A DNA stretch of 64,000 bases from contig JBLDXI010000031.1 in the NCBI GenBank assembly GCA_047495785.1, positions 310,001 to 374,000 of the forward strand, in the 5' to 3' direction. This stretch comes from Lepidodermella squamata (lineage: Eukaryota; Animalia; Gastrotricha). Numbering within the stretch: the first letter of the stretch is position 1; each line of letters opens with the position of its first letter. This document shows positions 23,301 to 55,711 of the stretch, in pieces. The notes below the pieces were generated by a model. The model saw only the letters and a program-made list of their open reading frames with translations. It searched no databases and was not told the origin of the DNA. The position numbers were made by a program, and so were the translations under genes.

Positions 23301-25065
23301 TCTGGGGACAACACAATGGGGACCGAGCATTCTGGGGACAAACTGTGGAATTAGTGACCCGCCAAACAGGTGACATAATCTGGGGACAACACAGTGGAGA
23401 CCGAGCATTCTTGGGACAAACGGTGGAATCAGTGACCCATGAAACAGGTGACAATTATCTGGGGACAACACAGTGGGGACCGAGCATTCTGGGAACAAGT
23501 TTTCTGTCACCAAAGTCTCGTCCCCAGATTTTTGTCCCCAGTTTTTTGTCCCCAGATTGTTGTCCCCAGAGTGTTCGGTCCTCATTCCCGAGGTGTTCGT
23601 CCCCAGAATGTTGAATTAGCAGTTTTCTGTCACCAAAGTCTCGTCCCCAGATTCTCGTCCCCAGTTTGGTGTCCCCAGATTGTTCGCTCCACATTCCCCA
23701 GGTGTTCGTCCGCAGAATGTTGTATGAGCAGTTTTCTGTCACCAAAGTCTCGTCCCCAGATTCTCGTCCCCAGATTTTTGTCCGCGGTTTGTTGACCCCA
23801 GATTGTTCGGTGTTAAATCCCCAGGTGAAATTTGAAAGCTGTTTGGGCTGTTTTAATGGCCACCTCGGCCTAGCTGTGATCGAATCTCCACGATGACGGT
23901 TGATAGATCGTTATTCGCTCATGCCGTTATTTCTGGGTCTACTGATTTCCGACTGGGAACCGAGAAAACCGGTGACAAATATCTGGGGACAACACAATGG
24001 GGACCGAGCATTCTGGGGACAAACTGTGGAATTAGTGACCCGCCAAACAGGTGACATAATCTGGGGACAACACAGTGGAGACCGAGCATTCTTGGGACAA
24101 ACGGTGGAATCAGTGACCCATGAAACAGGTGACAATTATCTGGAGACAACACAGTGGGGACCGAGCATTCTGGGAACAAGTTTTCTGTCACCAAAGTCTC
24201 GTCCCCAGATTTTTGTCCCCAGTTTTTTGTCCCCAGATTGTTGTCCCCAGAGTGTTCGGTCCTCATTCCCGAGGTGTTCGTCCCCAGAATGTTGAATTAG
24301 CAGTTTTCTGTCACCAAAGTCTCGTCCCCAGATTCTCGTCCCCAGTTTGGTGTCCCCAGATTGTTCGCTCCACATTCCCCAGGTGTTCGTCCGCAGAATG
24401 TTGTATGAGCAGTTTTCTGTCACCAAAGTCTCGTCCCCAGATTCTCGTCCCCAGATTTTTGTCCGCGGTTTGTTGACCCCAGATTGTTCGGTGTTAAATC
24501 CCCAGGTGAAATTTGAAAGCTGTTTGGGCTGTTTTAATGGCCACCTCGGCCTAGCTGTGATCGAATCTCCACGATGACGGTTGATAGATCGTTATTCGCT
24601 CATGCCGTTATTTCTGGGTCTACTGATTTCCGACTGGGAACCGAGAAAACCGGTGACAAATATCTGGGGACAACACAATGGGGACCGAGCATTCTGGGGA
24701 CAAGTTTTCTGTCACCAAAGCCTCGTCCCCAGATTCTCGTCCCCAGTTTGTTGTCCCCAGATTGTTCAATCCTTATTCCCTAGGTGTTCCTCCGCAGAAT
24801 GTTGTATGAGCAGTTTTCTGTCACCAAAGTCTCGTCCCCAGATTCTCGTCCCCGGATTTTTGTCCGCGGTTTGTTGACCCCAGATTGTTCGGTCCTAAAT
24901 CCCCAGGTGAAATTTGAAAGCTGTTTGGGCTGTTTTAATGGCCATCTCGGCCTAGCTGTGATCGAATCTCCACGATGACGGTTGAAAGATCGTTATTCGC
25001 TCATGCCGTTATTTCTGGGTCTACTGATTTCCGACTGGGAACCGAGAAAACCGGTGACAAATATC
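8319..25065. repeat. Complex satellite array, basic unit 681 bp, 23 cores, with variant and higher-order units
   Basis: Identical ORF-track peptides recur every 681 bp (8827, 9508, 10189 ... 13594). Each unit has a TGTCCCCAG-repeat arm, a ~130-bp unique core and a TGGGGACA-repeat arm. Variant units of 401-1362 bp occur after ~13.6 kb. Confidence 0.97.
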
Positions 25066-25080
25066 ACACTATATTTCGGT

Positions 25081-25098
25081 AGCGCCAATTTGCGCCAC
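25081..25098 (+). repeat. Left subterminal 18-bp direct repeat (partner at 53178-53195)
   Basis: AGCGCCAATTTGCGCCAC versus AGCGCCATTTTGCGCCAC, 17/18 identical. Confidence 0.8.
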
Positions 25099-25459
25099 TG
25101 CGCGCCAGTTACAGCCACCCGCGGCGCCGCGTACTTGAGTGTGTGCAAACAAGGCAAACACCGCATATTCTCGCCGTGGGATAACGCCCGCACTCGGGCG
25201 GTTTAAAGTTAAGCCTTGAACTATTCCAAAATTCAATGAACGGTGTTGACTTAAAGCGCATACTTCGACACGCTATCGATTTCCGAGTATTGAAATGAGA
25301 AATGGATAAAATAACACGTCTTTCCGGGGTGTCTTTGTTAAAACACTGATGAAACCATCGATGCGGTGAGTACCAGCAGTATATTAACCCCAAAATTCCA
25401 GAATTTCAGCATTAATAGTCAATTCTGCATCATTTTCAAACCCAATTTCGAACAAAGCT

Positions 25460-26404
25460 ATGCTATCAGCTGTAACAGTGGTTGTAGCCATTTCTTCGTG
25501 CATTTCAATTTTGCACGCGGAGCCACCTCAACTGGCTCCTGGTGTTGGCGCTTCAATCGGTCGCCAGTGGTATCATCAGCTGGCGTCAAACAATTCAACA
25601 GCCATGGTCGAATTCGTAAATTCATTGCCGACGCTCTGTTCATCAAACGACGCCGCGGAAGATTTGCCTGTTCGAATGATGGCCGCCTACTACGACGCCA
25701 ATAAGTTGGCGCAACCCGACTGCACCGAGCCGACGTTCGATTCCTGCATGGTTTCCATTGGCGGCGATACCCTCAAGCGATGGCTGGAGTTTCGCTATCA
25801 AGCGCCGTATGTGTGCCAATTTATTTCTTACCAAAATCAATCTTTAATAGACCAACTTGACTCGCTCCTTGTAAATTCCCGGTATTATGAGCAAATTAAG
25901 GTGGCGATTGAGAATTTTTTTATTCGTTGCGCCATATCTCAAATTTTCTGGTTGCCCAAGATGGAAAATGAGTTTAATATTGCCCGTGGGTTAGTTTACG
26001 TTTTCCTTATTACAATCGGTCTTCTATTTGCTTGCATCTGCTCGAAAGTATTGATAGTTTTCGCATTGCAAATGACATTAGGGGAAATTCTTATTTCAAT
26101 TTCGTTCCTACTAACTGATGACATCGTCAATGATAACATCTCGCCGCATCTGATCTGCCTTATTTTTCGTTACGCCCTTACTGTGCGCTTTCTTTTCTAC
26201 AACTGTCCCAAAAACTCGGAAATAGGAAAGCTTTTAATGCTAGTGAAATGCTGCGCGAAACAAATTGTTGTGAATTCGCGAAAGCGAAAGGCGGCTACTT
26301 TCGATGAAGAAGCTCTCGTACCCGCATTAGACAGTCCGCCGAAAAATCCGCCTCGCAGAACAACTCGTAGTTCTAATGCTTCAAATCGTAATAACGCTGC
26401 TTGA
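25460..26404 (+). CDS. Signal peptide, Cys-containing lumenal domain and ~3 TM segments; GEX1/KAR5/Brambleberry-like (tentative)
   Basis: Intact 314-aa ORF. N-terminal hydrophobic leader; LC...PDCTEPTFDSCMVSIGGDTLKRWLEFRYQAPYVC matches by eye the Cys-rich domain pattern of that family; three hydrophobic segments; basic C-terminal tail. Confidence 0.6.
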   Translation: MLSAVTVVVAISSCISILHAEPPQLAPGVGASIGRQWYHQLASNNSTAMVEFVNSLPTLCSSNDAAEDLPVRMMAAYYDANKLAQPDCTEPTFDSCMVSIGGDTLKRWLEFRYQAPYVCQFISYQNQSLIDQLDSLLVNSRYYEQIKVAIENFFIRCAISQIFWLPKMENEFNIARGLVYVFLITIGLLFACICSKVLIVFALQMTLGEILISISFLLTDDIVNDNISPHLICLIFRYALTVRFLFYNCPKNSEIGKLLMLVKCCAKQIVVNSRKRKAATFDEEALVPALDSPPKNPPRRTTRSSNASNRNNAA

Positions 26405-26703: not shown

Positions 26704-28004
26704 ATGGTTGAAGAAAACTTGGAAACCGACAAGCTTTCAATAATTAATTTTTGTGTTTTTTTGTTATTTAGAGCTTTGTTTTACATTGAAATTCTGCATC
26801 GCATGGCGGTTTTTCTGTCGCAAGCCGCGCTCGACAACCACGTTCGCGCAGAGATCTCGCGCCAGATCCCGGCCAGCTTCGCCGATTCTATGCTCGCGGC
26901 GACTTTGGTACCGCCGATCATCACCGCTCCGTTTATCGCCCCTTCAGGGTGCTTGCAGTCTCGGTCGGAAATTTGCCTTTTCCCGACAGTCCCGTTCTGG
27001 GCACAACAACAAGCAGCTGCCTATCAAATGCAAATGCAGTTTCAGCAAGCCTCCTCGAGCTTTTTGCCACCTTTTTCACCCTCTCCGAAGCCTAAAGAGA
27101 CCGGGCGCCGCGAAAAAATCTGCCGCTTTTGTAACACCAAGCGAAGCAGCAACCACTTTCAACGGCACGTTCGGAATTGCAAAGCGGCGAAAGCCAGGAA
27201 TGTCTCGATGGAGGAGCGCGAAATTGCCGCCACTATGGGCATCACGGCGGAAGCCCGCGACCGCGATGCCCTGCTAGAAAAGGTGTCATCCAAGGTCGCC
27301 AGTGTCGTGTCTAGAGGCCTCTCACGCGAGATACGGCCAATCAAGTGTCCGAATTCTGTTTCGAAACTTCCCGTCATCGTCGAGCGAACAGCTACATCGA
27401 CTACGTCGGGCCAGCTTAAGCAATGCAGCGAACATTTCAAGACGCTAATTGAGCTGTATCACGGTGGTAGTCGCTACAGATGGCTGCCCAAGAAGAAATC
27501 GAATACCAGGAAAGCAAAGAAAACTCGTCTCGCGTCGATTTTCACTCTATCAAGGACCTACAACCTCGAACAACTGGAGAGTTTCGACCACTGGGATCGA
27601 TTTTTCGAGTCGGGTGGCGCCATCTTACGTTTGAATCAGCCGAAAGTTGTCAAAAAATCGAAGGGCAAAAGCAAGCCGGCTACAGTCGGTCGCCGTGCCC
27701 AGTACTCTCGGATCAAAGAGCTAGGCGACTTTGTTTCCTGGCTTGCGGCGAATGGTCACATCGTCGAATCTCCGAAGCTGAAATCATTGCTCTTGGATAC
27801 AACGTCGCAGCTTCTCCAAGGCTCAAAACGAGAAAGCGGCCTCAAGAAAACCGAAAGAGCGAAGTTTGCCCATGACATGGAGCTACCGATGAAATTTTAC
27901 CAGCACATCGACGAGCTGATCGCTGAACGCCGAAAGGGGCTGAACCTTTACGGGCTCAAAATCGCTCGAATTGCAGTTGCGGCCAATTCTCATACCGGTT
28001 GCCG
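26704..28004 (+). CDS. Tyrosine recombinase exon 1 (C2HC zinc finger, ends inside the catalytic Arg codon)
   Basis: Zinc finger CRFC-x12-H-x3-C. The ORF ends NSHTGC-CG followed by the consensus donor GTGAGT at 28005. Alternative start Met at 26803. Confidence 0.8.
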
Positions 28005-30162
28005 GTGAGTAACAGCTTCGTCTTAATTTTTCAAACATAGCGCAGCCGGTTTTTCCTTTGGATTAACGATGAATCATGATTGAGTCATCAGAGCGTCATT
28101 TGGCTGTAGTGAAAGAATCGAAGTTTTCTCCGCGATTCTTCGCGATTCTTCAATTTCAAGGTGTTTTAAGGCGATTTGGAGCCTGTTACTACCTGCTGCA
28201 TCCGGAAACGGTTTCCTCAATAGCACCCGGTTCAAAAAAATTACGCCACTGATAAATCAGCAATATCATTTTATTTCGGCCGGCCATCGCGGCCATCGCC
28301 GTGAAAATAAGAAGGCAATTGGAGAAAAATAATCAGATTCACAACAATTATGCGCAATAAAATATTGACAGGAATGATCATAATTCAAATTTTCGCAGCC
28401 GGGACGATTTTGAAACCGCATACTTCCTACAAGATATCAATACTCAGTAAGCTTTGAGGCATTCATCAGCTGACAATAACCAGGTTTCCTAAGTGAAAAG
28501 TGAAAGTTACCTCAAAGTTGGGCATAGGTATTGACGCCAAAATTGAAGCAGGGAAAGAGCAATAAATAGGCATTAGAGGCACTGATAAAAAATCCGATTG
28601 AATTTAAAGCCGCAATATTTAATGGAAAATTAATACAATTACTCGAGGAATTTTCAGGCAGAATGAAAGCCGATTGAAAACAATTGATAGTGATAGAGAA
28701 TGTTCACGGCCAGCGGGGATTCTTCGCAGATCATAATAATATAAACAAGAATTTATTATTTGCAAGAATTCTTTGAAACTTTAAACGAAAATTTACAAAA
28801 TTGGTCGAGTCAGAAAGATGTAAGATTTTTCCATTTTTTTTTTTAATTTATTGTAACGCGGGAAAAATTATAGCCATGGTTGGGAATCTGGAGGCATGAT
28901 TTTCGCTAAAATCTGAGAGATTCGAACTCCATTTTTGAGGAACGAGAAAAAGATTAATTAATAGCGCAGTTTCCTACACTAACGTTTAAAAAATAATGAA
29001 AAATTCTACATTTTTTTCTGCACAATGAGACATCAGTACAGTCGTGTAGGACAAGGTGTCACGGCAGCATGAAATAGGAGCACGCACAAATTCATACATA
29101 ATTTACGTTATAGTCACGCGCGAGTAGTTTAATTTAGGTAAATTTAAAAACCACCTACTCACACGTTATAGCTGAAATTTTTTTCGAACATTTCTGGTAA
29201 AAGCTGTTATCAGAAGTAATTTAAACGAAGAGATAATAACATCGCAGTCGGTTTGAAAAAAAAGATGGCATATTAAATGCGACCATAACTACTGCAGTTT
29301 TGCGCGCAAAGTTCGAATTCACTAGAGCGTGTCGCATTGAATTCAGACCTGTACAAGGTGGCTAAAAAGTGCGTAATTTTTGCCGTCGCTAATCAGACGT
29401 ATTACAGTCAGTGTGAGCAACTTTTCACAAGTTCTGTAGATCTTGAAAATCAGACATCCTGGTGCCGAGTTTGAGCCCAATTCAGTTATGACATCGATTT
29501 GCGCTTTTACCGCCGATACTCGGGGTTCACGTTACAAGTGAGGCTCCAGCAAGAGAATTCTCAACAATTTTTGCCTGGGATTGCGGGGTAGGTAATTATA
29601 ACGCCACGTGCGGTAAGCTAACGAGAAAATACTAGGGCCTACAGAGCCGATACGGACGGATTTATGCATTATTTGATAGAAAATCATTTTTCAGAAATTT
29701 CAGTAATCGATTGCAGATTGCAGCATCGTCATATTTTCTACATAAATGTATAAATCAGACGGTACCTGGTACCCAAAAATGAGGAGAGGTTATAATGTCC
29801 ATACAAGTTGCTTATCAATATTGTAACGCATAAAATGTTGATAAAACGACGCGAAAACGTGTAGCAGCGCCAAGGCTTGAATTCAGTACTGGAGCCTCAA
29901 ATTGCTGAGAGCTGGGTTCCAATTTTTTATTAATAAAAGCCGTATAACCGCAGCTCTCAGTGCATGTTCTGTGGCGTGTTCAATAAGGGTTAAAATTATG
30001 GTATCAATTGGCCTAATAAGCCGAATTCAACTAAAAGAAGATATCATCACATATTATCGAATGAGAAAGTATCATCTGAGTATGTGGCCGAAAGGAAATT
30101 CAGCACTGGCTTGAAATTATTGCTCGATTTTCGATCGCACACACCGGATCGTCAATCAGATG

Positions 30163-30430
30163 TTCCATAGCTGGGCGTTGGTTCGGTAGCATGCAGGAAT
30201 GACAGCTGAAATAAAATCAGATATTAAAAAAAATAGAAAACGCAAGAAATTTTAAAATTTAAAATTGAATTATTTGAAATTTTGAAATTTTAATAAAATT
30301 CCATAGCTTGGCGTTGGTTCGATGGCATGCAGAAACGAGCTGAAATGAAATCAGATATAAGAAAAATGGGGAACGCGAGAAATTTTAAAATTTAAAATTT
30401 TAATATTTGAAATTTTGAAATTTTAATTTA
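30163..30430. repeat. Two-copy diverged tandem repeat, ~135 bp
   Basis: TTCCATAGCT(G/T)GGCGTTGGTTCG...GAAATTTTGAAATTTTAAT occurs twice. Confidence 0.75.
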
Positions 30431-30748
30431 AAAAATGGATGATTAGAAATATTTAAATTTTGAATGACATCGAGGATCAAGGCAATAGACAAATTCAGGA
30501 AATTTCTTAAAAAAAGAGGTGGAAAATCTGATAAATTACCGAGCTTTCTGTAGACTATATCGATATCGAAAGCCAGTAAGCTGCACGCACTCATCGGTCA
30601 AAGCATCACCAATCGATCGGCTGCTTTCCAATCTAAACAAAAATAAGAATATCATAGATGTTGCAATTTTTCATTCATAATGGCGCCGTTACAGTAAAGC
30701 TGGGAGCAGGGGGAATACCAGGTTAAAAATTTGGCAGTTGCGCAGTAG

Positions 30749-30877
30749 GGGTCTATTTCATCTGCTCGCGGAATATTTGTTTTTCATTGTGAAATTCCAT
30801 TTTTCTGATTTAAAATGAAATTAAAAGAAATTTCACAATGAAAGAGTCAATTTTCCGCGAACCGGTGAAATAGACCC
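30749..30877. mobile_element. Small foldback MITE (PIF/Harbinger-like)
   Basis: TIR GGGTCTATTTCA / TGAAATAGACCC, largely palindromic body, TAG on both sides. Confidence 0.55.
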
Positions 30878-33800
30878 TAGGAGTTGCATAGGGCCTATTA
30901 ATTTTCAGATTTATTCACGAAGGAAAACAATAAAATTCTTCATAATCAATAAATTACAAAATGAAATTTGAGGCTGAAATCCTTATTATGGTTTGCTATG
31001 AAACCGATAGCCTGACTTGATTTCAGCGTCCAATCAATTCTTAGGAATTTGATCTGTTGGTAGGGGATTAAGAGGGATCAAATTGAGAAATTTACCTTGG
31101 GAAAACAGCTTAGGTCAGCTTTGATTCCTGATTAGCATTGCCGTAACACAACTGGACTAACGGTGTGGTTAAACGGCCGCAAACTTGAAACTTGGCCGGC
31201 GAATCGACAGCCATGCATCAAAAAGTGCCGCGATGAAAAAGCGAAAAATACAATTCTAAAATTAAAAAAATAATGAACTGAAGGATGAACGGCATGCGGC
31301 ATAAGCCAGTAAGACAATTGCGACGCTTGGATTGTTACGTGAAAATAAGTGCGCAACAACTCCAAGTTCGCGCACAATGAAGAACACGCACGAAAAAATT
31401 GAGAAATAAAAATTGAGAAAAAAATCCCCTGATAACAAATAAATTTAATAAAAAATCGGAAAATACCCAGTCCGGCCTAATAGTTCCTGGCGTAAACGCT
31501 TGAAGGTTGAACATTATGCATGCAATTAAACTTTGGATCGAATTTAAATGAAAATTTTCAGTGAAAAGGAATTGGAAATTCGAAGAGCTGCTAATGCCTA
31601 TATTTGTGGAAAATAATGCCCAGAATATGTGTATCGCGAAGGCTGACAGAACTGAACGGTTTGATTTTACCATAGCGTTGGTGATAGTTAAGAGCCAGGT
31701 AATACAAAGAGTTACCACAAACCCACAAGCGAAAGAAATAAAAAATTTCTAAATTTCTAAAATTAGGCTCGAATTAAACCGATTTTTCAGACAATTCCAC
31801 TTTTCGCTCAAAAAATTCGGCTTTCGGCAAGCTCGCGTTTTGGATTGACAGTTTTCCAGCAGTTAAATTACCATAAAATTGTCATGATTCGCAGCTATTG
31901 GTTTGTATTGAGGTAAAATTATCAGACTACATTTTTAGAAATTTTACAACACTTTCTGATTTTCTGAATTTTGGCAAGTTATCACGCCAAGAAAATGCCA
32001 TCATTTCAAGATGAAATATTATTTCAATGAAAACAATGACCCGTCAAGCAAGGCGAGTCATTTAACACCAGAAGTTGAACGCAAAAGGGGCCGCAGCGAT
32101 GAAAGAGCAACGCGATGATAATGATGGCTTTTCCGCGCGTTGAGGTCATGCGGCTGTTTCTATAATTGAACGTAATAAAATAAAGCGGCAGACACTGACG
32201 AAGTGTTTCAGCCTAAAAGCAAAGAAACTTCCTCTAGTACCTGCTAGGGACTGGGGATAAATATTGATAATTTGATTTGGCAGAATTATTTGCTCGTACT
32301 GCGACGAGTTAATCCTTCTGACCATTGTTGCGCAATCGGATTATTTACAAACCTTCGATTTCGTTATTGCGGGTTCGAATTTTTCGCTTTTGTATGCTTA
32401 CAATTTTTCTTGAGTAATTAACTGCTTTTGGCTAATTTTCGATTATTCTACCGCAGCGACCTTGAAATCGTCGCTGAAGCAATGAATTTAGCTTGATGGG
32501 CGGCGGTTTTCTTATAATTTAACGTTACTTCTATTTGCCTCTTATGAACACTAAAATTGGAGTGCAAGTTTCATAAAATCGAAAACTTTTTCATTGGTAG
32601 CACATAGAATTTTGAATATTTGAATATAATATTTGAATAGTTTCGTGACGTTATCAGTTACCTATTTTACATGCTTACCGCTACGAATTCCTGCAACTAT
32701 CGGACGCGAAGTGGAATAACTAAGTAAGTTTCATGTCTTCATTGGAATAGGCTGCTGTCTACAGAAAATAAGAATTTTTTAAATTATTACTTTCCTTCGC
32801 GCCAGAAATCTCAAATTTGATAATGAGACGTATTTTTACTTTGCCAAGCCGTCTACTAGTAAGAATGACAAAAAAATTATCAACAAAATGTCTGTTTTTA
32901 AAGGAGATTTCAAAGTAGAAAAAGTCTTGAAATTGGCGGTTTTTTCAAGAAAAAAACAGGACAGCGTGAATGAGCATCATCAATAGTAGTAGTTAGTGAA
33001 GTTTATTCAAGAATTCCGAAACTTAGCCAAAAAATTCCAAAAGGTGGGTCGAAACCTCGAAATTAGAATTTTTAGTGTAGTGCAAAAAAGTCGCTATGAG
33101 CCCGCTAATCCCTCAGAGTGAATCACGCTAGTACTAAACATGCGAGAAGCTGGAGGGGGTTCGGAGGGGGTTCGGTTTTACAATGAAAAAATACTCCTCC
33201 GCCAGTAATGTTACGTAATGTGCTTCACTCACAATGAAAATCGAGACTCATTTTTTCGACTGGATTTTTTGCATGACAACCTAACATTGTGCTCGGATTA
33301 TCACCATTTTTTTCGAAAAAACACACCGTTTAAATTTTCCAATTGCGGTTAATAGAAAAATGAAACGGAAAAGGAAAAAGCCATAAAATCTAGACAATAA
33401 ATAGGTGAATCCCGAATCTCGTCTATACGTCGCTCGTCGTCAAAAATTGAAAGCAATTTTATCAGCATTTTTTACGCGAATTTTTATTTTTTATCGGCTA
33501 TGTGGAATTACTGTGGGCTGTGGGGTCGATGTGACAAAATGAAAAAAATGTGAAGGAAGACACGCTCCGTTTCACGTATTTCTACAATTTTCTATTTTAA
33601 ATTATTTAGCATGCCGTTATTATCAAGCCGAGCCGGTACCAAATTCCAAGACCGAACTTTCGAAAAGGAAAAACCTAGAACATCAGTCGAGCGTGCTACG
33701 AAAAATGTCGTTTAGTCGTTGGTCGTTTAGTGGCATCGGACTCGACAGTGATGTACCAATTATTACCAGTACGATGACGGCCTAATTCATAGCAACGCGG

Positions 33801-34977
33801 TTGAATCAAGCGAATTCGCCGAAACCATTCAACCGTGAAAATTTCGTATAAATCGAATACTGTTTTGGCAATCGTCCTTTTCGATTGCCCGGCGAGGCTT
33901 TGTAGCCCTCTAGCTTCGTTCAGCCAAATCCTTATCATGACACAACGATGACCCGAAAAGCATCGGTATCTACTTCGTCAATTTCTCTCTAAACCTATTT
34001 TCCCGCAATTTTACCGCGAACGAAGCGCGGTCAATGAGGTTGCATCGAATTCATCCAGCCGTTGCTACGCAGCTGGTGAGGTTCTTGTTGTTCTCGTCTC
34101 TTGCCTTCTTGGGGAAGCATTGAGCTGGAAGCTTCAAGTTTCGTTGGATCCAATTTGGTACTCGTGATCTGATTGAAAGGTCAGCTATTTCTTTCTATTA
34201 TTTCTCCGACTGATTATTCATCAAATATTTGTAAAACGGGCCTTAAATCAACGACTTGTGTCTTGTGTTGAATTTTTTAGCAAATGTTCTCTGAAATTTG
34301 TAGCTGTCGTCATATTTGCCCCGGACATCTCCCACGCTTGAGCTCCGCTAAATTTATTGATTATTTAAAAAAATTATAATTTAAAAAATATTATTTTTTC
34401 TTTGTTATCCATTTTCAGCCTCTATTATAATTTTTTATAACGACTAATTTTATGCCCCTCGTCAGCTTCGATCACCTTGGTTTAAATTTTCCAGAATTTT
34501 TCGCTATATCTCCACCCACATTTCTCGGCGACCTCAGGCGTGAATTAGAGCCCTCGAGCCTTTTCTCCCGGATTATTCCGAATTTTTCTAAATTCATAAA
34601 CTGTTTTTGAAAAATTCCCGGAATGAAGAAAAATGCTAGAGGTTCTATCGTGATTTTCAGGGGGAAAATAAATACAACAGCTTGAAAACAACAGTTGATT
34701 ATCTTCTGATGAAATTAAGCTGGATCGTTTTCTAGCGGGTCCAATTATTCCGAAAATAATTCCAAATATTTCCAAAAAATAATATATTCAGTTTCTTGTA
34801 TTTTAACTCAGGCTACCGTAGCCGCTGATACCCGATACAATTTGAAATGAATGGAATCGGAGTCGAAACTAAAACGATCGCAAATCGGGGACTCTAGTTA
34901 ATTCGAACAATGCTCGGATTGTCGGCTAAAAATTACCAGAAAATATTCTGCGACTCGATTTCTAAAACCGGCGTGCT

Positions 34978-43420: not shown

Positions 43421-43499
43421 CCTAAGCGCGTAGTGCAAGAACAGCAAGTTAGCCCTAGCTCTACAAATTAAACTTGAATAACGTACCTAGTAGAGCTTC

Positions 43500-43721: not shown

Positions 43722-43796
43722 CCAATTAACATTGCATCCTAGATTCGAACAACTAATTGTTAAACTAACGCTCAGGCATAAAGAATTACCTCAACC

Positions 43797-44378: not shown

Positions 44379-44646
44379 AAACTGCTCACCCAGGACTCGA
44401 AAGCCACAGCGATCCGCAAAGTTGTATCCCTGGAAAACAAAAAGCAAAATTGCTAACAGGCGTCTGTTACATTGATACCTTGTTAAATAATACTAGTCAA
44501 CTATCAAAATGATATTATACTCATATCCTGGCATGACAAGTAAATAACTAAGGCATAATAAATAAATAAGCCTGGCCTAATGACTTATGTCTTCAACTTG
44601 TTAGAACTCTGTTACCTCAATATAAAATTAATTTTCAAAACTCACA

Positions 44647-44946
44647 ATGGCTCTGCAAGATCGCGCCGCGGCCCTGTACAGGCAACCGACGACGGTGCCC
44701 GAACTCAGAGCTTACCTCGACTTTGCATTCGGGGAAATTCTGACGAGGGTTGACCACTTCAACCCGGTCGGCTTCGATGGTCGGCCGGTCAGCCCCATAG
44801 GGACAAGGATTGTACCCACAATCCTTATTTTCCTCGAGACCTCGTTCGAACTGATACTACTCGTATTAGATACTATCTCGCCAACCACAACGCCTGCAAC
44901 GTCAGAGGAGACGTTGACAAATGGTTCACCCATGATGGAAGAATAA
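44647..44946 (+). CDS. Gypsy accessory ORF D, 99 aa
   Basis: ACAATGG start; GC-rich block after an AT-rich spacer. Confidence 0.5.
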   Translation: MALQDRAAALYRQPTTVPELRAYLDFAFGEILTRVDHFNPVGFDGRPVSPIGTRIVPTILIFLETSFELILLVLDTISPTTTPATSEETLTNGSPMMEE

Positions 44947-45178
44947 ACAGCCCCGTCACAACAGAGGAACTTCATAATGTTCGACCATAGATAACCAACC
45001 ATGACAGCCATACTAGCACCGACAAATCATCACAAGAAGCCGACTCATTAAACCATAAGCTCAGTCTTTACTGTTTTACAAATCTAGAACCTAGAAACAA
45101 TAAAAGGAAAAGGCAAAATTTAAAACTTGTTAAACTTAATATAATCTATAATCTTAGAATTTTGAAAAATTATTATCA

Positions 45179-45775
45179 ATGGCTGCCAAAGTTTCCAAGA
45201 AAGAACTGTCGCCATCCAAGATGGAATCGCGGCGTTACCGTTATGCTCGCGAGTATCAAGAGGCCACACCAGAGGAACGAGTCCGTATGGACCGGACAAA
45301 GAGACCGGCTCCATATGATCAACTCTACGCCGAAAGTATTCCCCTAAGATCGAAATACATATCGCGAGAAGAAAAGCAGCAAGAAGAAGAAGCCATTGCG
45401 CTACGAAGAACTTTGGCTGGAGAAGCAGCCACGAGCAACGGGATCTATCGTCTAAGCAAGCAACCACAGGAAGAGACCCAGAGGTGCTCACCTAAGATCC
45501 TGGTACCAAAATTGGCGGTCGAAACTATGCCGAATCTGAGCGCAAGTACGACTGCAGTAACAACAGGCCAAGAGAAGGAGGTAGCAGGACCCGTAAGGGA
45601 CAATCACTATGTGCAAACACAGCCAGCCCATGTGTTCAACATGCACGTAACAGATGGCAAATTCAACATAAATTTGGACACAGTGGTCCGGATCCAGCAT
45701 GAATTCCCGCCAAAGGCCGGATGCGTATCAGTCTGGTCACCCGAAACATATCAACAGCAAGAACCGAAGTGGTAG
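45179..45775 (+). CDS. Gypsy accessory ORF E, charged, 198 aa
   Basis: ATG-initiated open frame bounded by AT-rich spacers. Confidence 0.55.
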   Translation: MAAKVSKKELSPSKMESRRYRYAREYQEATPEERVRMDRTKRPAPYDQLYAESIPLRSKYISREEKQQEEEAIALRRTLAGEAATSNGIYRLSKQPQEETQRCSPKILVPKLAVETMPNLSASTTAVTTGQEKEVAGPVRDNHYVQTQPAHVFNMHVTDGKFNINLDTVVRIQHEFPPKAGCVSVWSPETYQQQEPKW

Positions 45776-46221
45776 AAAGAAGAGCGTAAAAGATGAACAC
45801 TGCGTGAACTTCCCTATGTCACCCATTAAAACCTAGAAACGATTTAGATAAACAAAATACGAAAATTGTTAGTAAAAGCCCTAGAGAACTAAGTAAAACG
45901 GTCGTTTTAATAAAGAAACCTGAGTGGACAAAGTTTTGAAGAGTGAAAAACCACCAAAACCGCTGAAAAATCACGTTCACCTACTAACTTAAACCTGCAA
46001 CTTTTTCTCGAAAACTCCTGAGAAATGTGAAGGAAAAATATATTTTAGCTAAATAAATAATTATTGATGCTAAAATAATATTTTAAAAATATTTTAAAAA
46101 TTGTTTTACCAAATAAAATTTAGTTTTCGCCGCAGGATTCTGGAATTTTTGCCAAAAATCAACCGACGCGTTTTGAAAAGTCGCCATCATTTCGGGACGA
46201 AATGTAAAGTAACGCGGGAGG

Positions 46222-46874
46222 TGTCATCGGATTAAACACTCAACACCAATACGTTTCAAAAGGTTTATTCATATTTTCAATACCAGCTACCGGTTTCAAG
46301 CCACCAACGCTCGAACATCAGAAATGAGTTACGACGCACCTCCGTACGCAACAATAATTCGTAACTACGCATCAGCAATCTCGAAATACGCAATAGGAAA
46401 TCGATCAGCAATCGATTCAAAGATAATGCGCAATCAATACGCAATAGGAATAATGACTCATCTCCATGATGCAATCGATACGTCATAATAATTATGACTC
46501 ATCATAGCTTCGACTTAATAAATATGAATCATCTATAGAAAGTACTATGATGGATCTTGGCAATATTCCAATGACGCAGTAGCATGAGCCTATATAAACT
46601 CCATGTTTCTCATTCTGTATCAACTAACTAACAAGCTTAACTAGCAGACCACTAGAACTAGCAAAGCTAACGGCTCACGAGCTTTGATTAGTTTATGACA
46701 CTAGAGTTACGTGTGCTACTAACTGTCGACGAAGTCATCCGAAGACTTCTGCCCTGTGTCACCGAACAAGTGTCGCAATAAAATATCAAATACCAGAATT
46801 AATTCTCTATCTGTTATTCGAGTTGATCAAGCTACTGGTTTGATATAACTCTGTTCTAATAGATAGGTGTGACA
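46222..46874 (+). repeat. 3' LTR
   Basis: Copy of 36853-37505, preceded by the purine-rich GCGGGAGG. Confidence 0.95.
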
Positions 46875-47675
46875 TACTCAGGCGTGAAGTAGAGCCTTTT
46901 CTCCTGGATTTTTACGATCCATAAACTGGTTATGAAAAAATAACACAAATGAAGACTTATTCTATCGTGATTTCAGGGGAAAAATAGCGTAAAAATATTA
47001 TATAAAGATACCAGCCCTAAATGCAAAACACCGTTAAATTTGGTGGCTCTAATTTTTCTCCTAGACATTTTTACGCCCATTTTCAAGTCGATTCACTATT
47101 CACATCTTCATGTCTCCGCGCCTCTTATTTTATTATTTAATTACTCTACGTGATTTTTTTTTATAGATAACGCTTTATCAAGGCATGAGGATTTCAAGGC
47201 CGGCGTTTGACTCGGCTGGCTCACAATGCGCCTATAAATTCGAAAAACTTGGAAATTTGTGGGAGTGGACTCGACTGACTTGGCTCGAATTCCCCAAAAG
47301 CATTCAGCATTGAAAAATTTCGGACGAACCAGTCTGTTTAAGGAATCGTTCTCTCTTCAATTCGTCGCCCTTGAGTTTCGTTCAATCAAATGACGTCAGA
47401 CCAGACACGGCGATGACCCGAAAATTATCGGTATATGCTGAGGCCTGAAACGCGGAATTCTCTCAGAACAGCTACATTTTCCCGCATCTCAACCGTGAAA
47501 ATCGCGCGTTCAGAGAGAGCGATCTCCAAACGAAATAAGCCGTGGCCACATTTGCGCTGCAGCGATTGGCCGATGCCGTTTTCGTTGATATTGTATTTTT
47601 GGAAATGCTAAAGCCTCGACTTTCGGTCGATTCTGTTACTGGTGACCTGACAATAGGTAAGCTACCTAATTTAAT

Positions 47676-47989
47676 CGGATTATCTTTCAGCGGAACCTAA
47701 TTTGCTTTTTGCGGAACCAAACTGGAAATCTGCCAAGAGTCATTATTTTCATATTTCTATGAATTCTAGGCTAAGCCTGAATTCTGAATTGAACACTGCG
47801 TTCTGCGTTTTATGGAGAATGTTGCGCTGAATTCACAGGTGAATTTTCTAGAATTATTGTGGCCAATCTTGACCTGCAATAAATATCCGAAAAGCGATTT
47901 CCGGCCACTAGAAAAGTCTAAAATTTGGTTCCGATACAGCAAATTTGGTTCCGCTCACCGTAAATTTGGTTCCGCTAAAAGGAGGACCC
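47676..47989. mobile_element. Mutator-like MITE
   Basis: 9-bp TSD TAATTTAAT (47667-47675, 47990-47998) and imperfect TIRs carrying GCGGAACC / GGTTCCGC repeats. Confidence 0.6.
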
Positions 47990-49093
47990 TAATTTAATGC
48001 CTCATATCGATTTTTTATTTTATTAATTTGAGAAACCGGTGGGGAATTTCATTTCGGCAATTCGACTCATACATTCGGTAGATTCATTCAGGCGTGACGT
48101 GAAGTCTCCGAGCTTCAAATAATTTAAGAACAGTTCATTGTGTGACAAAATTAATAAATTCTAAACATTATAATCAGTTCATTTTATTGTTAATCCCAGG
48201 CAACCCCAGCCACGAGCCCCGACACTACCTGGTGCAATTTTTGGAATCGGAGTCGGAATGAGACGCAACGTTAATTCGAGCTATGTTCGGACTGTCGGCA
48301 TGTCAGTAAATTGGCCTGCGACTCGGTTTAAAAATGTCCACCCGAAAACGAATTTATCAGACACACCGCAATCACTCGACCGTGACGGACTTGCTGTTGC
48401 AAGTCTAATTTGAGCCTTCAGTTGTCACTGAGACGTCGCTGGCTGGCAAGAACTTCATCCTGGACGGGACAAATTTCCAGTTCAAGCAGGCTTGTGCAAG
48501 GTAGGCTAGTAGCAGTAATTTTTTCGCTTTTATTTTTATCACGAAATTTATTGAAATTGGTAATGCTGTGCGACTGTGAACATAATTCCACTCTTCTCTA
48601 TTGTTTTCCGAATTATTTAAAAATGAAAAATTAATACCTAAGAATATCTTGCCGTAAAAAATCAATTAAGGTGACTTCTCGGATTAGATTTTCAAATGTT
48701 TTCTTGGATTAATTTTGTTTCATAATTTGGTGATAATTCGTGAAAACTCAGTCACGAATTTCCATCTTACGTTGTGAAATTTTATTCGCTGGCGATCGGG
48801 ATCGGAATTATCAAGCTTCCATCAAGCCTCGCTGTCATTTTTGCTAATTTTCACCATTTTGTACTTTATTATTAATTTCTTTAAAAATACGGCAACGAAA
48901 CCTTTTTATTGCTGATTGTAGTACATTCAAGAATTTGAATCATACGTTATTAGGTCAGTTTTTTGAGGCAGAGATTCTTTAAAAATTCCATTAATGATTG
49001 ATTACGTATTTAAAATCAACCAAGCGTGACAGAATTACTATTTGGACCATGTAAAAGAAGTTGAAGTTGAAGCTGAGCATAGATAGACATTAA

Positions 49094-49675
49094 CCCGTTA
49101 ATGCCCGTAACTATTTTTCATGAATATCATGACGAAAACATTATTTCCGACTTAGGGTGCTATGGAACATTTTTACAAGCAGCTCAAGCTGAATCCAACG
49201 ATATATAGATTACATAGGGTCATTTTCGAAGTATATTTATATATATTATATGCTGTTACGTAATACATATAATATATAGCTAAGTACTTGAATTCCAATG
49301 GAAAACCGATTTGACAGGTGTCAAATTCCGAAATTCGGTAATTTAATATGCTAATTGGTAAATTCATGGTTCTTTTTGCATAAAATTCGGCATTTGACAA
49401 ATTTTATTTTGGCCAATCATACCAGGGTTCCATTTGGCACCGATTTCCCGTAAATCACTCCTAAAGGTATCGATCGGATCAAATCGAATCCTTCGATTTC
49501 GATCGATCGATATTCCGAGGCCCGATCTGATTACCCCCTTGATATGGATATCGTTGGATAGGAAATTTTGTATAGGTTCGGGAAGGTTCCCTCAATTTCT
49601 TTGCCCGATAATTCGTGAATCCACTAGAAGCCTCAGAGCACGTGTCATCTATATAGGACGCCGGGCGTGAATGGG
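49094..49675. mobile_element. piggyBac-like MITE
   Basis: TTAA on both sides; imperfect 14-bp TIR CCCGTTAATGCCCG / CGGGCGTGAATGGG. Confidence 0.65.
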
Positions 49676-51166
49676 TTAAGACGCTAATTCCAATTTTCTC
49701 GTAGAAAACTGTCGATTTTTCCGTCTCCAACACGGCGTTTCCCTCATATTTTGGCGTCGTTTTACAATAGGCCACCCTAATTATGGCCGCTTGGATTATA
49801 CCTATAAATCATCTTCAATTTCCGCATCATTCAGACCTAGAAGATTGTGAATTTTCTGCTTTGAGTTGGATGCATAATCATCTCACGCTACTAAATTGTG
49901 TAAGGTCTTGCTTGATCCCTCAGCTAGCTTTTGCGCGAATAATTTGCAATTCAAATATTCCTTCGTTTACAGGAATGAATTCACTTCTCCAATCTCCTAT
50001 TGCAAGCCGAAAATGGGTCGATTCAACTTCAGCCGAGAACCCTTCAATCGAGGATGTCTCGCAATCACCCTGAGATCCTGAGGAAACTGCCGAACGTAAA
50101 TCGAAATCGATTCGCCCAGCTTCGAAGACCAGCATTTTGTCAAATCCACCAGAGTGTAATCGCTCGTCTTGTTACATCACAAAATTATGCTGCACGTCCG
50201 CCCGAAGTTTCTCAGACTTCATCGAACTTCAAACTCGATTGTTCATTGCTTCGTAACTCATTTCGCAACTGTTGACGATCCTTTTTAGCTGGAACTGCTT
50301 TTAAACATGACGAATCAATAAAAGTTTCATAGTTTCACTCAAATACCTTCAAAAAGCCTCGACTTCGATCTATGAACCTTAGCAAATTCTTGCATGAAAC
50401 ATCACTTGGGTTCATTCCTTCAGTTTTCAGTTATTCTTGATCACTGGAACCTTTCAGTTCCAGTTTAGAACATTCAGTATCCTGTTTTGAAGTGACAAAC
50501 AGCTAGAATAAACATATCTCCGACTGCTGCCATGAAAAACCGGCTTTAAATGCATCAAAACACCGAGTTCAAACCTTGGTTTGCTGGTTGAACCTCGAAC
50601 ACGAGAAATTTTTACGGCGGCGTCGCCCGTTGCCATGGAAACGGCTAGTCAAGGTCGCGTTACTATAATTTTATTTTTCCGATAACTATTTTGATGAGAT
50701 AAAATTATTTTTAAGAATTAACAGCGACTTAATTAACAAAAATTCGCGTACAATAAATCCCACTTTTGTAGGAAAAACAGGCTGCGCTATGAAGATTCAA
50801 CAAACGTGAAAAATTTTTAGTAATTTTTTATCGATCATTTAAATTATTTTTCCAAATTCCATTTCACGTCAAAAAGCATAAATTTCTAAAAAAAATCGTG
50901 CGATCGGGCATTTTTCAAATTTAATTTTAATTTAATTTGAGGGCAATTTTCAAGTTCAAATGCATAAATTTCCAAGGTTGAATTTGATCGGAAATTCCAT
51001 CAATCCTTAAAACAAACAAATCACCGATTCTGGAATCGATTATTCGCTTCAGTTTATTTCGCTCAAGTATTCAAATAATTTGGTGCTCACCACCGATTCA
51101 GAGGTGGACAAAATATTCAAGGTTTTATCATTTCCAGCTTTTTCATCGTCATTTTTTATTTTTCAG

Positions 51167-51854
51167 AGCTTCTGGAATTCGGAAAATGAAACTTACTGAG
51201 TGGAAAGCGAGGGATGGCGATGCTGATGGAGAAGGTTGGGTTTGTGTTGAGGTAAAAGGAATGAAAAACTCGATTTCTGGATTCCCGTTCGTCACCTTCG
51301 ACCCCGCAACAGCCGCCTTAATTCAAAGCTACATCGATAATGACCGGCCGGCGTCGAAAAACAAGCGGGTTTTTTTGACTCAAAAACGAACAAGAATCAG
51401 TTCCTCGACGCTGAACGAGTACGCAAACCTCGGTTGGCCGTCGTTCAAAGAAAAGTTTCAGCCGAATTTCAGCCGGCCGCTCAGTGATACCTTTACACTT
51501 ACCACCCAGCGCCGAGCAATCAATACTACTACGCGTTCAGAGAAGGACCCCGACCAGCCGCCTCAGGCCAAAGTTAATCAGGCGTTGGTGCAAAGTGAGC
51601 CCACGGGCGAGTCGGTCTATACCCTCACCGCTGCAGTTTCGGAGGCGATCGGGGTCGCAAAATGGGCGTACTACAAGTGTGCGAACCGCCTTGATCCGTC
51701 GAACCCAGAGCTACGCCCGTTCGCATACAGGCCTGTCAAAGCCGTCCCGCTTTCATCAAACAACACCGAGGGGTCTAAGGAGTCGAAGGATAGTGAAGAC
51801 GAAAATTCCTCGAGCGAAGACGAAAATTCCAGCAGCGACGATGACTGCTGCTAA
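51167..51854 (+). CDS. Tyrosine recombinase exon 2 (catalytic domain)
   Basis: Acceptor TTTTTTATTTTTCAG ends at 51166. Splicing to 28004 gives TGC-R-ASGIRKMKLTEW in frame, then VKGMKN, RP...VFL, TTQRRAINT and ALVQSEPTGESVY. Spliced protein ~662 aa. Confidence 0.82.
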
Positions 51855-52471
51855 AGTATTATTGTCTTGTGTTGTAGTTGATTTTTTACTTGATTTTTCG
51901 GCGCTCACATTGATCAAACTTGTGGAAGAAATTTTCAAAAGAATTAAATAATACAGAAATTCGGGAAGATAAAATTTCATTTTTCGGCGCAAAAAAACGG
52001 CGCAAAAAATCTTTTTTTCATCTGTTGCTATGTTCGCGCTCAATATTTAAAAAATTACGCTTGATCCTCACATTTTTATTATCTTCTTTACTATCTTCTC
52101 GTTTGATATATTGCTCGCGTAATTTCACGATGTCTGATTTCATGATGTCATGTGATTTCTGTCACAAAAGTTGTTATCCAATTTGGTCTATCGTATCAAT
52201 AAAAACGCTCGAGTTACGGCGATTACGCGATCTGAGTCTTGGAAATGCGAATGACGTAGGTGCGATGATGAGATGCGACGCGCAAGGCAGACCGTAAAAT
52301 GCAACGACGCGCATCGGTTAGGAGAGAGGTGTTAAAAGCGTGTCCGCCATCGCCATTTTCAGCAACGGCCTTGAGCTACAATGACGCCAGGTGCGTATAA
52401 AAACCGGCGGAGCATCATCAGTCCAGCATTGGTATCATTTTCAGCAATAAGTTTTTCGATTATTTCTCATA

Positions 52472-52852
52472 ATGCCTTCTTGGTCTGCGTATTTCGACCA
52501 TCGGCGCCCTTGTCAGCTTTTCCGGGTACTTTGCTCGCCATCTGCGAGTGAAGGGCCGTCATCGTTTTCGACTGCAACCTCGACTACGACGACTACAACC
52601 TCGACTACGACGACTACAACGAGCTCGCTGTCTTCGACTTCGTTCGATGACTTGCTGAAATCGCCGCAACGTTACTACGACGATATGCACGCCACCTACA
52701 CCGCTTTTGTTGTAGTCATCGCGATCTTGGCGGTAAGTCTGTTGGTCTCCGTTGCGGTCGGCGTCGGTTATCTATTCCGCGCGGCCATCGCTAAGCGTTG
52801 CTGTCGCAAGGCGACGTTTGAAGAAGCTGCCATCAACGCCGAGCGCCGCTAG
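52472..52852 (+). CDS. Small single-pass membrane protein with a Ser/Thr-rich stalk, 126 aa
   Basis: Poly-Thr tract, TM segment AFVVVIAILAVSLLVSVAVGVGYLF, then KRCCRK. TATAAAA at 52396-52402 and AATAAA at ~53065. Confidence 0.7.
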   Translation: MPSWSAYFDHRRPCQLFRVLCSPSASEGPSSFSTATSTTTTTTSTTTTTTSSLSSTSFDDLLKSPQRYYDDMHATYTAFVVVIAILAVSLLVSVAVGVGYLFRAAIAKRCCRKATFEEAAINAERR

Positions 52853-53198
52853 CGACACGACTTTCTCGCGTGATCACCCTCGCCGCGGTCGTTCCGTTCT
52901 GAAGGCAGAAATCAAGGCAGAAGTGCATCAACCGGCTGACGAAGAATCGCTGGAAGAACTGTTTTCAGCTTAAAATGCCGCCTTAAAGCGGACTTAAACC
53001 GGCCCTTTTCAGGGCCACAAGTGATTGCAACAGTGTTTTATTCCTGGTGTTTCCGGAGTATGAAAATAAAGTTCATATGAGAGCGAGCCGCGGTAGATGG
53101 TGCGTTGATAGTGTTTAGCCATTGTGTCAACAACTTGAGCGCATGTTTGCGCATTGCGTAATCGCCTGCTGTGCGCGAGCGCCATTTTGCGCCACAAT

Positions 53199-55711
53199 AA
53201 TATCTGGGGACAACACAATGGGGACCGAGCATTCTGGGGACAAAACTCTGGGGACAACACATTGGGGACCGAGCATTCTTGGGACAAACGGTGGAATCAG
53301 TGACCCATCAAACATGTGACAATTATCTGGGGACAACACAGTGGGGACCGAGCATTCTGGGAACAAGTTTTCTGTCACCAAAGTCTCGTCCCCAGATTCT
53401 CGTCCCCAGATTTTTGTCCCCGGTTTGTTGACCCCAGATTGTTCGGTCCTAAATCCCCAGGTGAAATTTGAAAGCTGTTTGGGCTGTTTTAATGGCCACC
53501 TCGGCCTAGCTGTGATCGAATCTCCACGATGACGGTTGATAGATCGTTATTCGCTCATGCCGTTATTTCTGGGTCTACTGATTTCCGACTGGGAACCGAG
53601 AAAACCGGTGACAAATATCTGGGGACAACACATTGGGGCCCGAGCATTCTGGGGACAAAACTCTGGGGACAACACATTGGGGACCGAGCATTCTTGGGAC
53701 AAACGGTGGAATCAGTGACCCATCAAACATGTGACAATTATCTGGGGACAACACAGTGGGGACCGAGAAAACGGGTGACAAAAATCTGGGGACAACACAA
53801 TGGGGACCGAGCATTCTGGGAACAAGTTTTCTGTCACCAAAGTCTCGTCCCCAGATTTTTGTCCCCAGTTTTTTGTCCCCATATTGTTGTCCCCAGAGTG
53901 TTCGGTCCTCATTCCCGAGGTGTTCGTCCGCAGAATGTTGAATTAGCAGTTTTCTGTCACCAAAGTCTCGTCCCCAGTTTGGTGTCCCCAGATTGTTCGC
54001 TCCACATTCCCCAGGTGTTCGTCCGCAGAATGTTGTATGAGCAGTTTTCTGTCACCAAAGTCTCGTCCCCAGATTCTCGTCCCCAGATTTTTGTCCGCGG
54101 TTTGTTGACCCCAGATTGTTCGGTGTTAAATCCCCAGGTGAAATTTGAAAGCTGTTTGGGCTGTTTTAATGGCCACCTCGGCCTAGCTGTGATCGAATCT
54201 CCACGATGACGGTTGATAGATCGTTATTCGCTCATGCCGTTATTTCTGGGTCTACTGATTTCCGACTGGGAACCGAGAAAACCGGTGACAAATATCTGGG
54301 GACAACACAATGGGGACCGAGCATTCTGGGGACAAACTGTGGAATTAGTGACCCACCAAACAGGTGACATAATCTGGGGACAACACAGTGGAGACCGAGA
54401 AAACGGGTGACAAAAATCTGGGGACAACACATTGGGGCCCGAGCATTCTGGGGACAAAACTCTGGGGACAACGCATTGGGGCCCGAGCATTCTTGGGACA
54501 AACGGTGGAATCAGTGACCCATCAAACATGTGACAATTATCTGGGGACAACACAGTGGGGACCGAGCATTCTGGGGACAAACTGTGGAATTAGTGACCCA
54601 CCAAACAGGTGACATAATCTGGGGACAACACATTGGGGCCCGAGCATTCTGGGGACAAAACTCTGGGGACAACACATTGGGGACCGAGCATTCTTGGGAC
54701 AAACGGTGGAATCAGTGACCCATCAAACATGTGACAATTATCTGAGGACAACACAGTGGGGACCGAGAAAACGGGTGACAAAAATCTGGGGACAACACAA
54801 TGGGGACCGAGCATTCTGGGAACAAGTTTTCTGTCACCAAAGTCTCGTCCCCAGATTTTTGTCCCCAGTTTTTTGTCCCCATATTGTTGTCCACAGAGTG
54901 TTCGGTCCTCATTCCCGAGGTGTTCGTCCGCAGAATGTTGAATTAGCAGTTTTCTGTCACCAAAGTCTCGTCCCCAGATTTTTGTCCCCAGTTTTTTGTC
55001 CCCATATTGTTGTCCCCAGAGTGTTCGGTCCTCATTCCCGAGGTGTTCGTCCGCAGAATGTTGAATTAGCAGTTTTCTGTCACCAAAGTCTCGTCCCCAG
55101 ATTCTCGTCCCCAGATTTTTGTCCGCGGTTTGTTGACCCCAGATTGTTCGGTGTTAAATCCCCAGGTGAAATTTGAAAGCTGTTTGGGCTGTTTTAATGG
55201 CCACCTCGGCCTAGCTGTGATCGAATCTCCACGATGACGGTTGATAGATCGTTATTCGCTCATGCCGTTATTTCTGGGTCTACTGATTTCCGACTGGGAA
55301 CCGAGAAAACCGGTGACAAATATCTGGGGACAACACAATGGGGACCGAGCATTCTGGGGACAAACTGTGGAATTAGTGACCCGCCAAACAGGTGACAATT
55401 ATCTGGGGACAACACAGTGGGGACCGAGAAAACCGGTGACAAATATCTGGGAACAACACAATGGGGCCCGAGCATTCTGGGGACAAACTGTGGAATTAGT
55501 GACCCACCAAACAGGTGACATAATCTGGGGACAACACAGTGGAGACCGAGAAAACGGGTTACAAAAATCTGGGAACAACACAATGGGGCCCGAGCATTCT
55601 GGGGACAAAAATCTGGGGACAACACATTGGGGACCGAGCATTCTTGGGACAAACGGTGGAATCAGTGACCCATCAAACAGGTGACAATTATCTGGGACAA
55701 CACAATGGGGA
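53199..55711. repeat. Continuation of the satellite array (3 cores)
   Basis: Resumes exactly where the unit was broken at 25065. Confidence 0.95.

Follow-up and report, generated by a model that had tools for sequence, protein, structure and literature searches.

The window analysed here is a 64,000-bp stretch of the genome of the gastrotrich Lepidodermella squamata (contig JBLDXI010000031.1, positions 310,001 to 374,000), in which a satellite array is interrupted by a candidate Crypton-type transposon, a mobile DNA element that moves by means of a tyrosine recombinase (YR). Between the two edges of the interrupted satellite lie three genes, all on the + strand, which encode a multi-pass membrane protein (gene 1), the recombinase and a small membrane protein (gene 3). 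A first-pass annotation of the window had recognised these three co-oriented genes, and we found the same order in L002, a metagenomic contig that carries a related element. The features of the element and of its insertion site, in window coordinates, are as follows.

25060..25065, + strand: left copy of AATATC, satellite sequence; crossover core or target duplication.
25066..25459, + strand: left terminal region; first ∼17 bp conserved with L002; GCGCC at 25082, 25092 and 25102 (10-bp phase), also at 25124.
25460..26404, + strand: gene 1, 314 aa, intact and intronless.
26803..28005, + strand: tyrosine recombinase exon 1; the open reading frame (ORF) opens at 26704, with the likely start Met34 at 26803; CCHH zinc knuckle, N-terminal helical domain and a box I ending in TGCR.
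28006..51166, + strand: recombinase intron, a single intron of 23,161 bp; the homologous intron is ∼53–69 bp in relatives.
51167..51854, + strand: second exon of the recombinase, 228 aa; beta-hairpin Lys (GMK), Arg-II (TTQRR), LVQ with Gln in place of His-II, and Tyr nine residues on.
52472..52973, + strand: gene 3, small membrane protein that has one span and is rich in Ser/Thr in its N-terminal part.
52974..53198, + strand: right terminal region; GCGCC at 53179 and 53189 in 10-bp phase, oriented as at the left end.
53199..53204, + strand: right copy of AATATC, 6-bp direct repeat.
21408..22055, + strand: intact paralogue of the insertion site in the same satellite array (empty-site equivalent), 99.2% match.

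The satellite has a higher-order unit of 681 bp, composed of 14-bp GTCCCCAGATT-type subrepeats that run in both orientations. It is interrupted at 25065/25066 after ...GGTGACAAATATC and picks up again at 53204/53205 with TGGGGACAAC. The direct repeat at the two junctions is exactly 6 bp, AATATC, at 25060–25065 and 53199–53204, and the base that precedes it is A in the satellite and T at the right end of the element. The string that spans the intact site, GGTGACAAATATCTGGGGACAAC, occurs more than 25 times within the window with one AATATC each. When the flanks were rejoined in silico (500 bp from the left, including one AATATC, and 500 bp from the right) they matched the array unit at 21408–22055 at 99.2% over 648 bp, across the junction. 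Since the rejoined flanks match an intact unit and only the 6 bp are doubled, not a single satellite base was lost and the insertion of the element is precise. The first-pass annotation had described a satellite that stops and resumes with nothing missing and a 6-bp AATATC at both junctions, and both observations stand. The locus thus provides an unusually clean insertion footprint because the satellite offers dozens of empty-site copies. The accompanying proposal that the element targets the satellite is not supported, since the window holds a single insertion and the element in L002 sits in unique AT-rich DNA.

For identification of relatives of the recombinase we used an exhaustive profile search of 1.84 billion representative proteins with a cut-off of E≤0.001, which returned 16 proteins only. 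Two of the weakest matches were bacterial FG-GAP/Ig-repeat proteins and are presumably spurious. We aligned 13 of the 16; these are unnamed proteins, ten of which were traced to a handful of ENA and Logan metagenome assemblies. A protein word search found no relative with exon 1, one with exon 2 and two with gene 1, and the alignments of the YR and of gene 1 retrieved no relative from the JGI metagenome contigs or from IMG/VR. The most informative relative is L002 (ENA ERZ27332993, 4,874 bp), which encodes homologues of all three genes in the order and orientation seen in the window, within ∼3.9 kb. Its similarity to the window copy is distributed as follows.

Gene 1: 45% identity over 288 aa, E 9e-76.
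YR exon 1: 32% identity.
YR exon 2: 50% identity.
Small membrane protein: 54% identity over the N-terminal 26 aa, E 5e-6.

Copies nearly identical to the L002 element (99.5–99.8%) are present in assemblies from three or four samples, and one such contig stops at position 4142 of L002, close to the inferred end of the element. A candidate flanking hexamer, TTCTTC (repeated at 4154), would give an element of 3,930 bp; this limit is uncertain, with the contig break at 4142 competing for the same role. An acidic ORF on the minus strand of L002 (4137–4493) lies beside or overlaps the element, and part of it, ...KSTVQSQSRYFNKFLKFCNWKREE..., may resemble N-terminal domains found in other recombinase-derived proteins of eukaryotes. 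An intron occupies the homologous codon of the recombinase in the relatives, 53 bp long in contig L001 and represented in L002 by a gap of ∼57–69 bp between the exon calls. A membrane protein also accompanies a more distant recombinase (P0004, ∼31% identity): directly downstream of it, on contig L011, is a gene with a signal peptide, cysteines and multiple spans whose product is collinear with that of gene 1 (22% identity, E 0.003). Since the three-gene order and the short intron are kept in relatives, the membrane genes are part of the element and not passengers, and the ancestral element was compact. The membrane genes had been called cargo; kept as they are alongside the recombinase at 32–50% amino acid identity, they are better described as core accessory genes.

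The ends of the elements are conserved as well. The first ∼17 bp of the left end can be aligned between the window (ACACTATATTTCGGTAG) and L002 (ATCATATATTTCAGTGG), and both ends of both elements carry pentamers in direct orientation and in 10-bp phase, GCGCC in the window and GGTCCC and GCCCC in L002. The 18-bp att-like direct repeats that had been proposed for the window copy correspond to these phased pentamer arrays. Repeat searches revealed neither terminal inverted repeats nor long terminal direct repeats at the element ends, and the only reverse transcriptase found lies inside a nested long terminal repeat (LTR) retrotransposon, with none belonging to the element itself; on the inverted repeats and the reverse transcriptase we agree with the first-pass annotation.

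The size of the element was misjudged. The distance from AATATC to AATATC is 28.1 kb, of which ∼23.2 kb is the single intron of the recombinase gene, and within this intron an inverted-repeat-bounded block accounts for almost all of the excess. Without that block the element measures 5,379 bp. The functional element is thus ∼5.0–5.4 kb rather than 28 kb, the remainder being later insertion into an intron that is ∼53–69 bp in relatives, and the apparent 28-kb carrier of cargo is in fact a 5-kb element whose intron has been stuffed. The two features that fill it are the following.

28037..50790, strand not assigned: inverted-repeat-bounded block of ∼22.75 kb with a 20-bp inverted repeat (1 mismatch).
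36853..46874, + strand: nested Ty3/gypsy LTR retrotransposon with gag, protease, reverse transcriptase, RNase H and integrase (Pfam).

The arms of the inverted repeat lie at 28037–28056, 31 bp inside the splice donor, and at 50771–50790, 376 bp before the acceptor; shuffling leads one to expect 0.01 such matches. The 12.7 kb of the block outside the LTR element contain no ORF longer than 130 aa, and ten ORFs of 75–127 aa from the block gave no Pfam match when scanned. We detected no clear target duplication and no transposase ORF for the block, which is probably a decayed transposon of the terminal-inverted-repeat type that filled the intron. The LTRs of the Ty3/gypsy element, which start at 36853 and 46222, are 100% identical over 655 bp, and the element is flanked by a target duplication of its own, TACT at 36849–36852 and 46875–46878, which marks it as an insertion in its own right and a very young one. 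Its gag and pol domains are spread over three ORFs, and three further ORFs 3' of the integrase (42908–43420, 43797–44378 and 45179–45775) have no Pfam match. The likely course of events after insertion is that the recombinase intron gained ∼22.75 kb, the inverted-repeat-bounded block coming first and the young Ty3/gypsy element then entering it. Given its 23-kb intron and the frameshift in its gene 3, the copy in the window has probably lost its autonomy and is probably dead.

The recombinase is ∼630 aa long and is interrupted by one phase-2 intron immediately after the box I arginine, which is the last residue of exon 1 in the window copy. Exon 1 finishes with ...SHTGCR at the donor CCG|GTGAGT (28005/28006), the acceptor TTTCAG| precedes 51167, and exon 2 completes the arginine codon in phase and continues with ASGIRKMKLTEW. 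The zinc knuckle of exon 1 is conserved as C-x2-C-x7-H-x3-H. In the aligned relatives the motifs follow one another in the expected order, as box I RPS..EW, a hairpin lysine (MKN), an invariant arginine in F.F..QR(R/H), and LGH with the tyrosine nine residues later. One of the relatives (P0012) matches the Pfam family Phage_integrase (PF00589) with an E value of 1.4e-3 over 162 of the 172 model positions. An AlphaFold model of exon 2, built from a 16-sequence alignment, has a mean pLDDT of 81. When 48,161 chains were searched with it by a method independent of Foldseek, all of the 20 best matches were tyrosine recombinases or type IB topoisomerases; archaeal XerA was the best (Z 7.2, 136 aligned residues, rmsd 3.6), and the integrase of Tn1549, Cre, Flp, XerH, the Brujita and SSV1 integrases, IntI and lambda integrase were among the others. 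The best Foldseek rows were the Tn1549 integrase, XerA and Cre, with weak E-values, a shape search of the Atlas led to Phage_integrase clusters, and the best match of the profile to PDB sequences was again XerA (E 0.97). Each of these lines is modest but together they are consistent, and on this combination of motif and model comparisons we accept the product of the middle gene as a genuine, very divergent tyrosine recombinase, with the fold of these enzymes and the motif series R...K...R...(H/Q)...Y.

Published descriptions of Cryptons list as hallmarks a YR, short terminal direct repeats of 4–6 bp, the absence of terminal inverted and long repeats, and an occasional second gene (PMC3212892). 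The element in the window shares with them an intron-bearing YR, 6-bp direct repeats at both termini and the lack of a reverse transcriptase and of terminal inverted or long direct repeats; a second gene is likewise known from some families, namely the Ulp1/C48 peptidase of oomycete elements (Goodwin et al. 2003; Kojima and Jurka 2011, PMC3212892). The precise insertion bounded by a 6-bp direct repeat and the spliced zinc-finger YR accompanied by two membrane proteins, without terminal inverted repeats or a reverse transcriptase of its own, were borne out from the first-pass annotation and amount to a Crypton-type layout with unusual accessory genes. We consider it quite probable (about 0.8) that the locus holds a single copy of a Crypton-like DNA transposon that is compact (∼5.0–5.4 kb), has three genes and is inserted at AATATC in the 681-bp satellite unit. 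It fits the structural definition of a Crypton, and its assignment is by structure, not by phylogeny among the Crypton groups. It differs from described Cryptons in that its YR matches no Pfam family, including the DUF3504 of CryptonA and the GCR1_C of CryptonF, in that the first catalytic histidine is missing throughout its family and the second is replaced by glutamine in its subfamily, and in having two conserved genes for membrane proteins as well as subterminal arrays of phased pentamers. No Pfam match to DUF3504, GCR1_C or DUF3435 was obtained even at E≤10 with the window YR or its relatives. In analogy to the model published for Cryptons, the phased pentamers at the ends would be bound by the recombinase, recombination between the 6-bp repeats on either side would release the element as a circle, and the circle would reinsert at a matching short core.

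Two other groups of YR elements invite comparison. The Starship/Enterprise elements of fungi are likewise DNA elements mobilised by a YR, flanked by short direct repeats and equipped with additional genes, and a circular intermediate has reportedly been described for them recently (bioRxiv 10.64898/2026.09.21.753150). However, in the known ones a DUF3435 captain occupies one end and the variable cargo amounts to tens or hundreds of kb, whereas the element in the window lacks DUF3435 and has a small fixed gene set, its bulk being intron fill; in a comparison of language-model features, one relative (P0005) reached DUF3435 clusters only at 0.91. The DIRS, Ngaro and PAT elements likewise use a tyrosine recombinase, and a circular intermediate is thought likely for them, but their genes include gag, reverse transcriptase and RNase H, and their terminal repeats are inverted or split direct, while the only reverse transcriptase here belongs to the separate, nested Ty3/gypsy element. 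Cryptons are rare and poorly understood, and to our knowledge those of animals are known almost only as recombinase-only elements or domesticated genes. Our literature search found no published description of a Crypton with membrane-protein genes. The element belongs to a small family for which we found no published description; the clean empty site, the phased end motifs and the HMGN/Dsup-like tails described below are new here. A lineage with three fixed genes would widen the known coding range of tyrosine-recombinase transposons.

The membrane proteins deserve separate consideration. In the product of gene 1 we recognise a signal-like N-terminus, a helical domain whose cysteines are conserved, a highly conserved segment (YYEQIK.AIENFFI.CA.SQ), a hydrophobic block of 1–3 spans, of which one is strong and one or two are weaker, and a basic tail. 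Neither gene 1 nor gene 3 of the window gave a Pfam match even at E≤10, and the Atlas returned none for gene 1. Compared with KAR5, GEX1 and Brambleberry, the gene 1 product is compatible only in its general layout (signal, Cys-bearing helical domain and C-terminal spans), its model having a pLDDT of 48.6. In the window copy of gene 3 the conserved SRD-PRR tail is cut off from the membrane span by a frameshift near 52830–52850. The tails of gene 1 that follow RKRKA, which itself resembles a nuclear localization signal, read PPRRTTRSS in the window, APRRSSRLS in P0026 and APRRSTRLS in P0027, and the tail of L002 gene 3, a gene not homologous to gene 1, ends in NPRRSTRIA. The two membrane proteins have in common a basic tail with the motif PRR[ST][ST]R[LI].

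This motif resembles the nucleosome-binding core of HMGN proteins, RRSARLSA (PMC12487698). A segment of tardigrade Dsup with the sequence PPRRSSRLT was seen by cryo-electron microscopy on the nucleosome acidic patch, anchored by its first and last arginines, and the same 2025 structural study names Dsup as the only known non-vertebrate protein with the motif and predicts an untapped set of others (PMC12487698). The core with its two anchoring arginines is matched in the gene 1 tails of P0026 and P0027 and in L002 gene 3, although a Pfam search for HMG14_17 gave no match. Unlike in HMGN and Dsup, which are soluble chromatin proteins, the motif stands here at the end of transposon-encoded membrane proteins. 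From the closeness of the match and its recurrence in two unrelated proteins of one element, we infer that tails facing the nucleoplasm may bind nucleosomes, and that the products of gene 1 and gene 3 would then be nuclear-envelope proteins holding chromatin. More speculatively, they might serve the nuclear retention or delivery of the element. The fullest version of this proposal is that the element represents an undescribed animal branch of Crypton type with its own pair of nuclear-envelope proteins, which grip nucleosomes by an HMGN/Dsup-type anchor and possibly tether the excised circle or the surrounding chromatin to the envelope; we offer it tentatively and regard it as unlikely in this form. 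If it were true, a DNA intermediate without a centromere would be kept in or delivered to daughter nuclei, a eukaryotic DNA transposon would possess a counterpart of LANA-like episome maintenance as in herpesviruses, and transposon-encoded membrane proteins would be an unexpected addition to the carriers of HMGN/Dsup-type motifs.

Several observations weigh against these readings. A lox- or dif-like dyad is absent both from the predicted circle junction and from the target, and the 6-bp repeat on its own fits a recombinase crossover core or a staggered-cut target duplication equally well. Only one full copy of the element is present within the 64-kb window. The whole recombinase family lacks the first histidine of the customary HxxR, and the window YR and its closest relatives have LVQ in place of LGH, so that the catalytic activity of the recombinase is only putative. 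No Pfam family was found at threshold, or even at E≤10, with the window's own YR, and the structural Z scores are moderate, at most 7.2. As for the membrane proteins, the case for their function is built on a short linear motif, the copies of it in the window are degenerate (RRTTRSS in gene 1, and a tail out of frame in gene 3), and the AlphaFold model of gene 1, at the pLDDT given above, is unusable.

Some of these observations would be accommodated if the block had been inserted by a DDE-type cut-and-paste transposase or another enzyme acting in trans, with AATATC as an ordinary target site duplication and the recombinase serving resolution or a domesticated role. A perfect 6-bp flanking repeat is typical of staggered-cut transposition, the joined ends show no dyad-symmetric core site, the hexamer that best qualifies as a repeat flanking the L002 element is another one (TTCTTC), and the YR of the subfamily lacks both canonical histidines. 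We nevertheless judge this explanation improbable: the block has no terminal inverted repeats and encodes no transposase, its ends bear direct, phased pentamers that covary between families, and 6-bp terminal direct repeats are themselves a published hallmark of Cryptons (PMC3212892). Less probable still is a genuine giant YR element of 28 kb, Starship-like in carrying cargo and specifically targeting the satellite. The 28.1 kb between the AATATC copies did enter as, or become, one block, and a second, unrelated sequence meets the satellite at the same ATATC position (56405/56406). Yet ∼23.2 kb of the supposed giant are a single intron whose counterpart in relatives is ∼53–69 bp, this intron is occupied by an entire LTR retrotransposon flanked by a target duplication of its own, as well as by an inverted-repeat block without Pfam match in the ORFs scanned, L002 has the same three genes in ∼3.9 kb outside any satellite, and the DUF3435 signature of a captain is lacking. 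These findings make the giant element very hard to sustain.

We attach similarly little credence to the view that there is no mobile element at all, the locus being either a cluster of host genes with satellite grown around it or an assembly error that joined unrelated contigs within the repeat. The region is certainly unfriendly to assembly, with its satellite array and an 8.16-kb tandem duplication without mismatches, but the rejoined flanks reproduce an array unit that stands intact nearby, at 99.2%, and no more and no less than 6 bp are doubled. Moreover, the three genes are also found together in relatives that come from other samples, where terminal sequence is conserved as well, and the contig of one relative breaks near the element end (L002:4142), as repeats would. 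The compact Crypton-like transposon accordingly remains our preferred reading of the locus.

A second copy of the right end of the element downstream belongs to the duplication just mentioned.

49229..57385, + strand: segmental duplication unit of 8.16 kb, repeated from 57386 to the window end (64000).

The right 3,976 bp of the element (49229–53204) recur at 57386–61360 with one indel in 3,976 bp, and the satellite beyond the duplicated right end is identical over 2,640 bp with 0 mismatches. The second right end is therefore a tandem segmental duplication, either very recent or an assembly artefact, and does not represent an independent transposition. In the proposed sequence of events, the duplication that copied the right end would follow the filling of the intron.

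Within the window the satellite extends over 8320–25065, 53205–56405 and 61361–64000, and variant sub-arrays with periods of 44, 78, 109, 123, 167 and 401 are present. We had suspected that the satellite was derived from the element ends, as an 11-mer, TATTTGTCACC, is common to it and the right end of L002; however, the local alignment scores of the satellite unit against the four element ends lay within the range of shuffled sequences, and we put the resemblance down to chance. An unrelated 300-bp spacer (55715–56010) separates + and - satellite stretches in a foldback-like arrangement. The inverted stretch ends ...CCCCAGATATC at 56405/56406, where it is joined to 980 bp of unrelated, ORF-poor sequence (window 56395–57385). 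This breakpoint is at the same position of the repeat unit as the element junctions, within one base, and the far side of the unrelated stretch (56406–57385) is cut off by the segmental duplication at 57385/57386. The junction at 56405/56406 may be the remnant of a second event at the same site, or the site may be prone to breakage or exchange. Upstream of the satellite, on the minus strand, ORF fragments at 6168–6563 (integrase-core-like) and 7282–7626 (reverse-transcriptase-like) are the remains of other retroelements.

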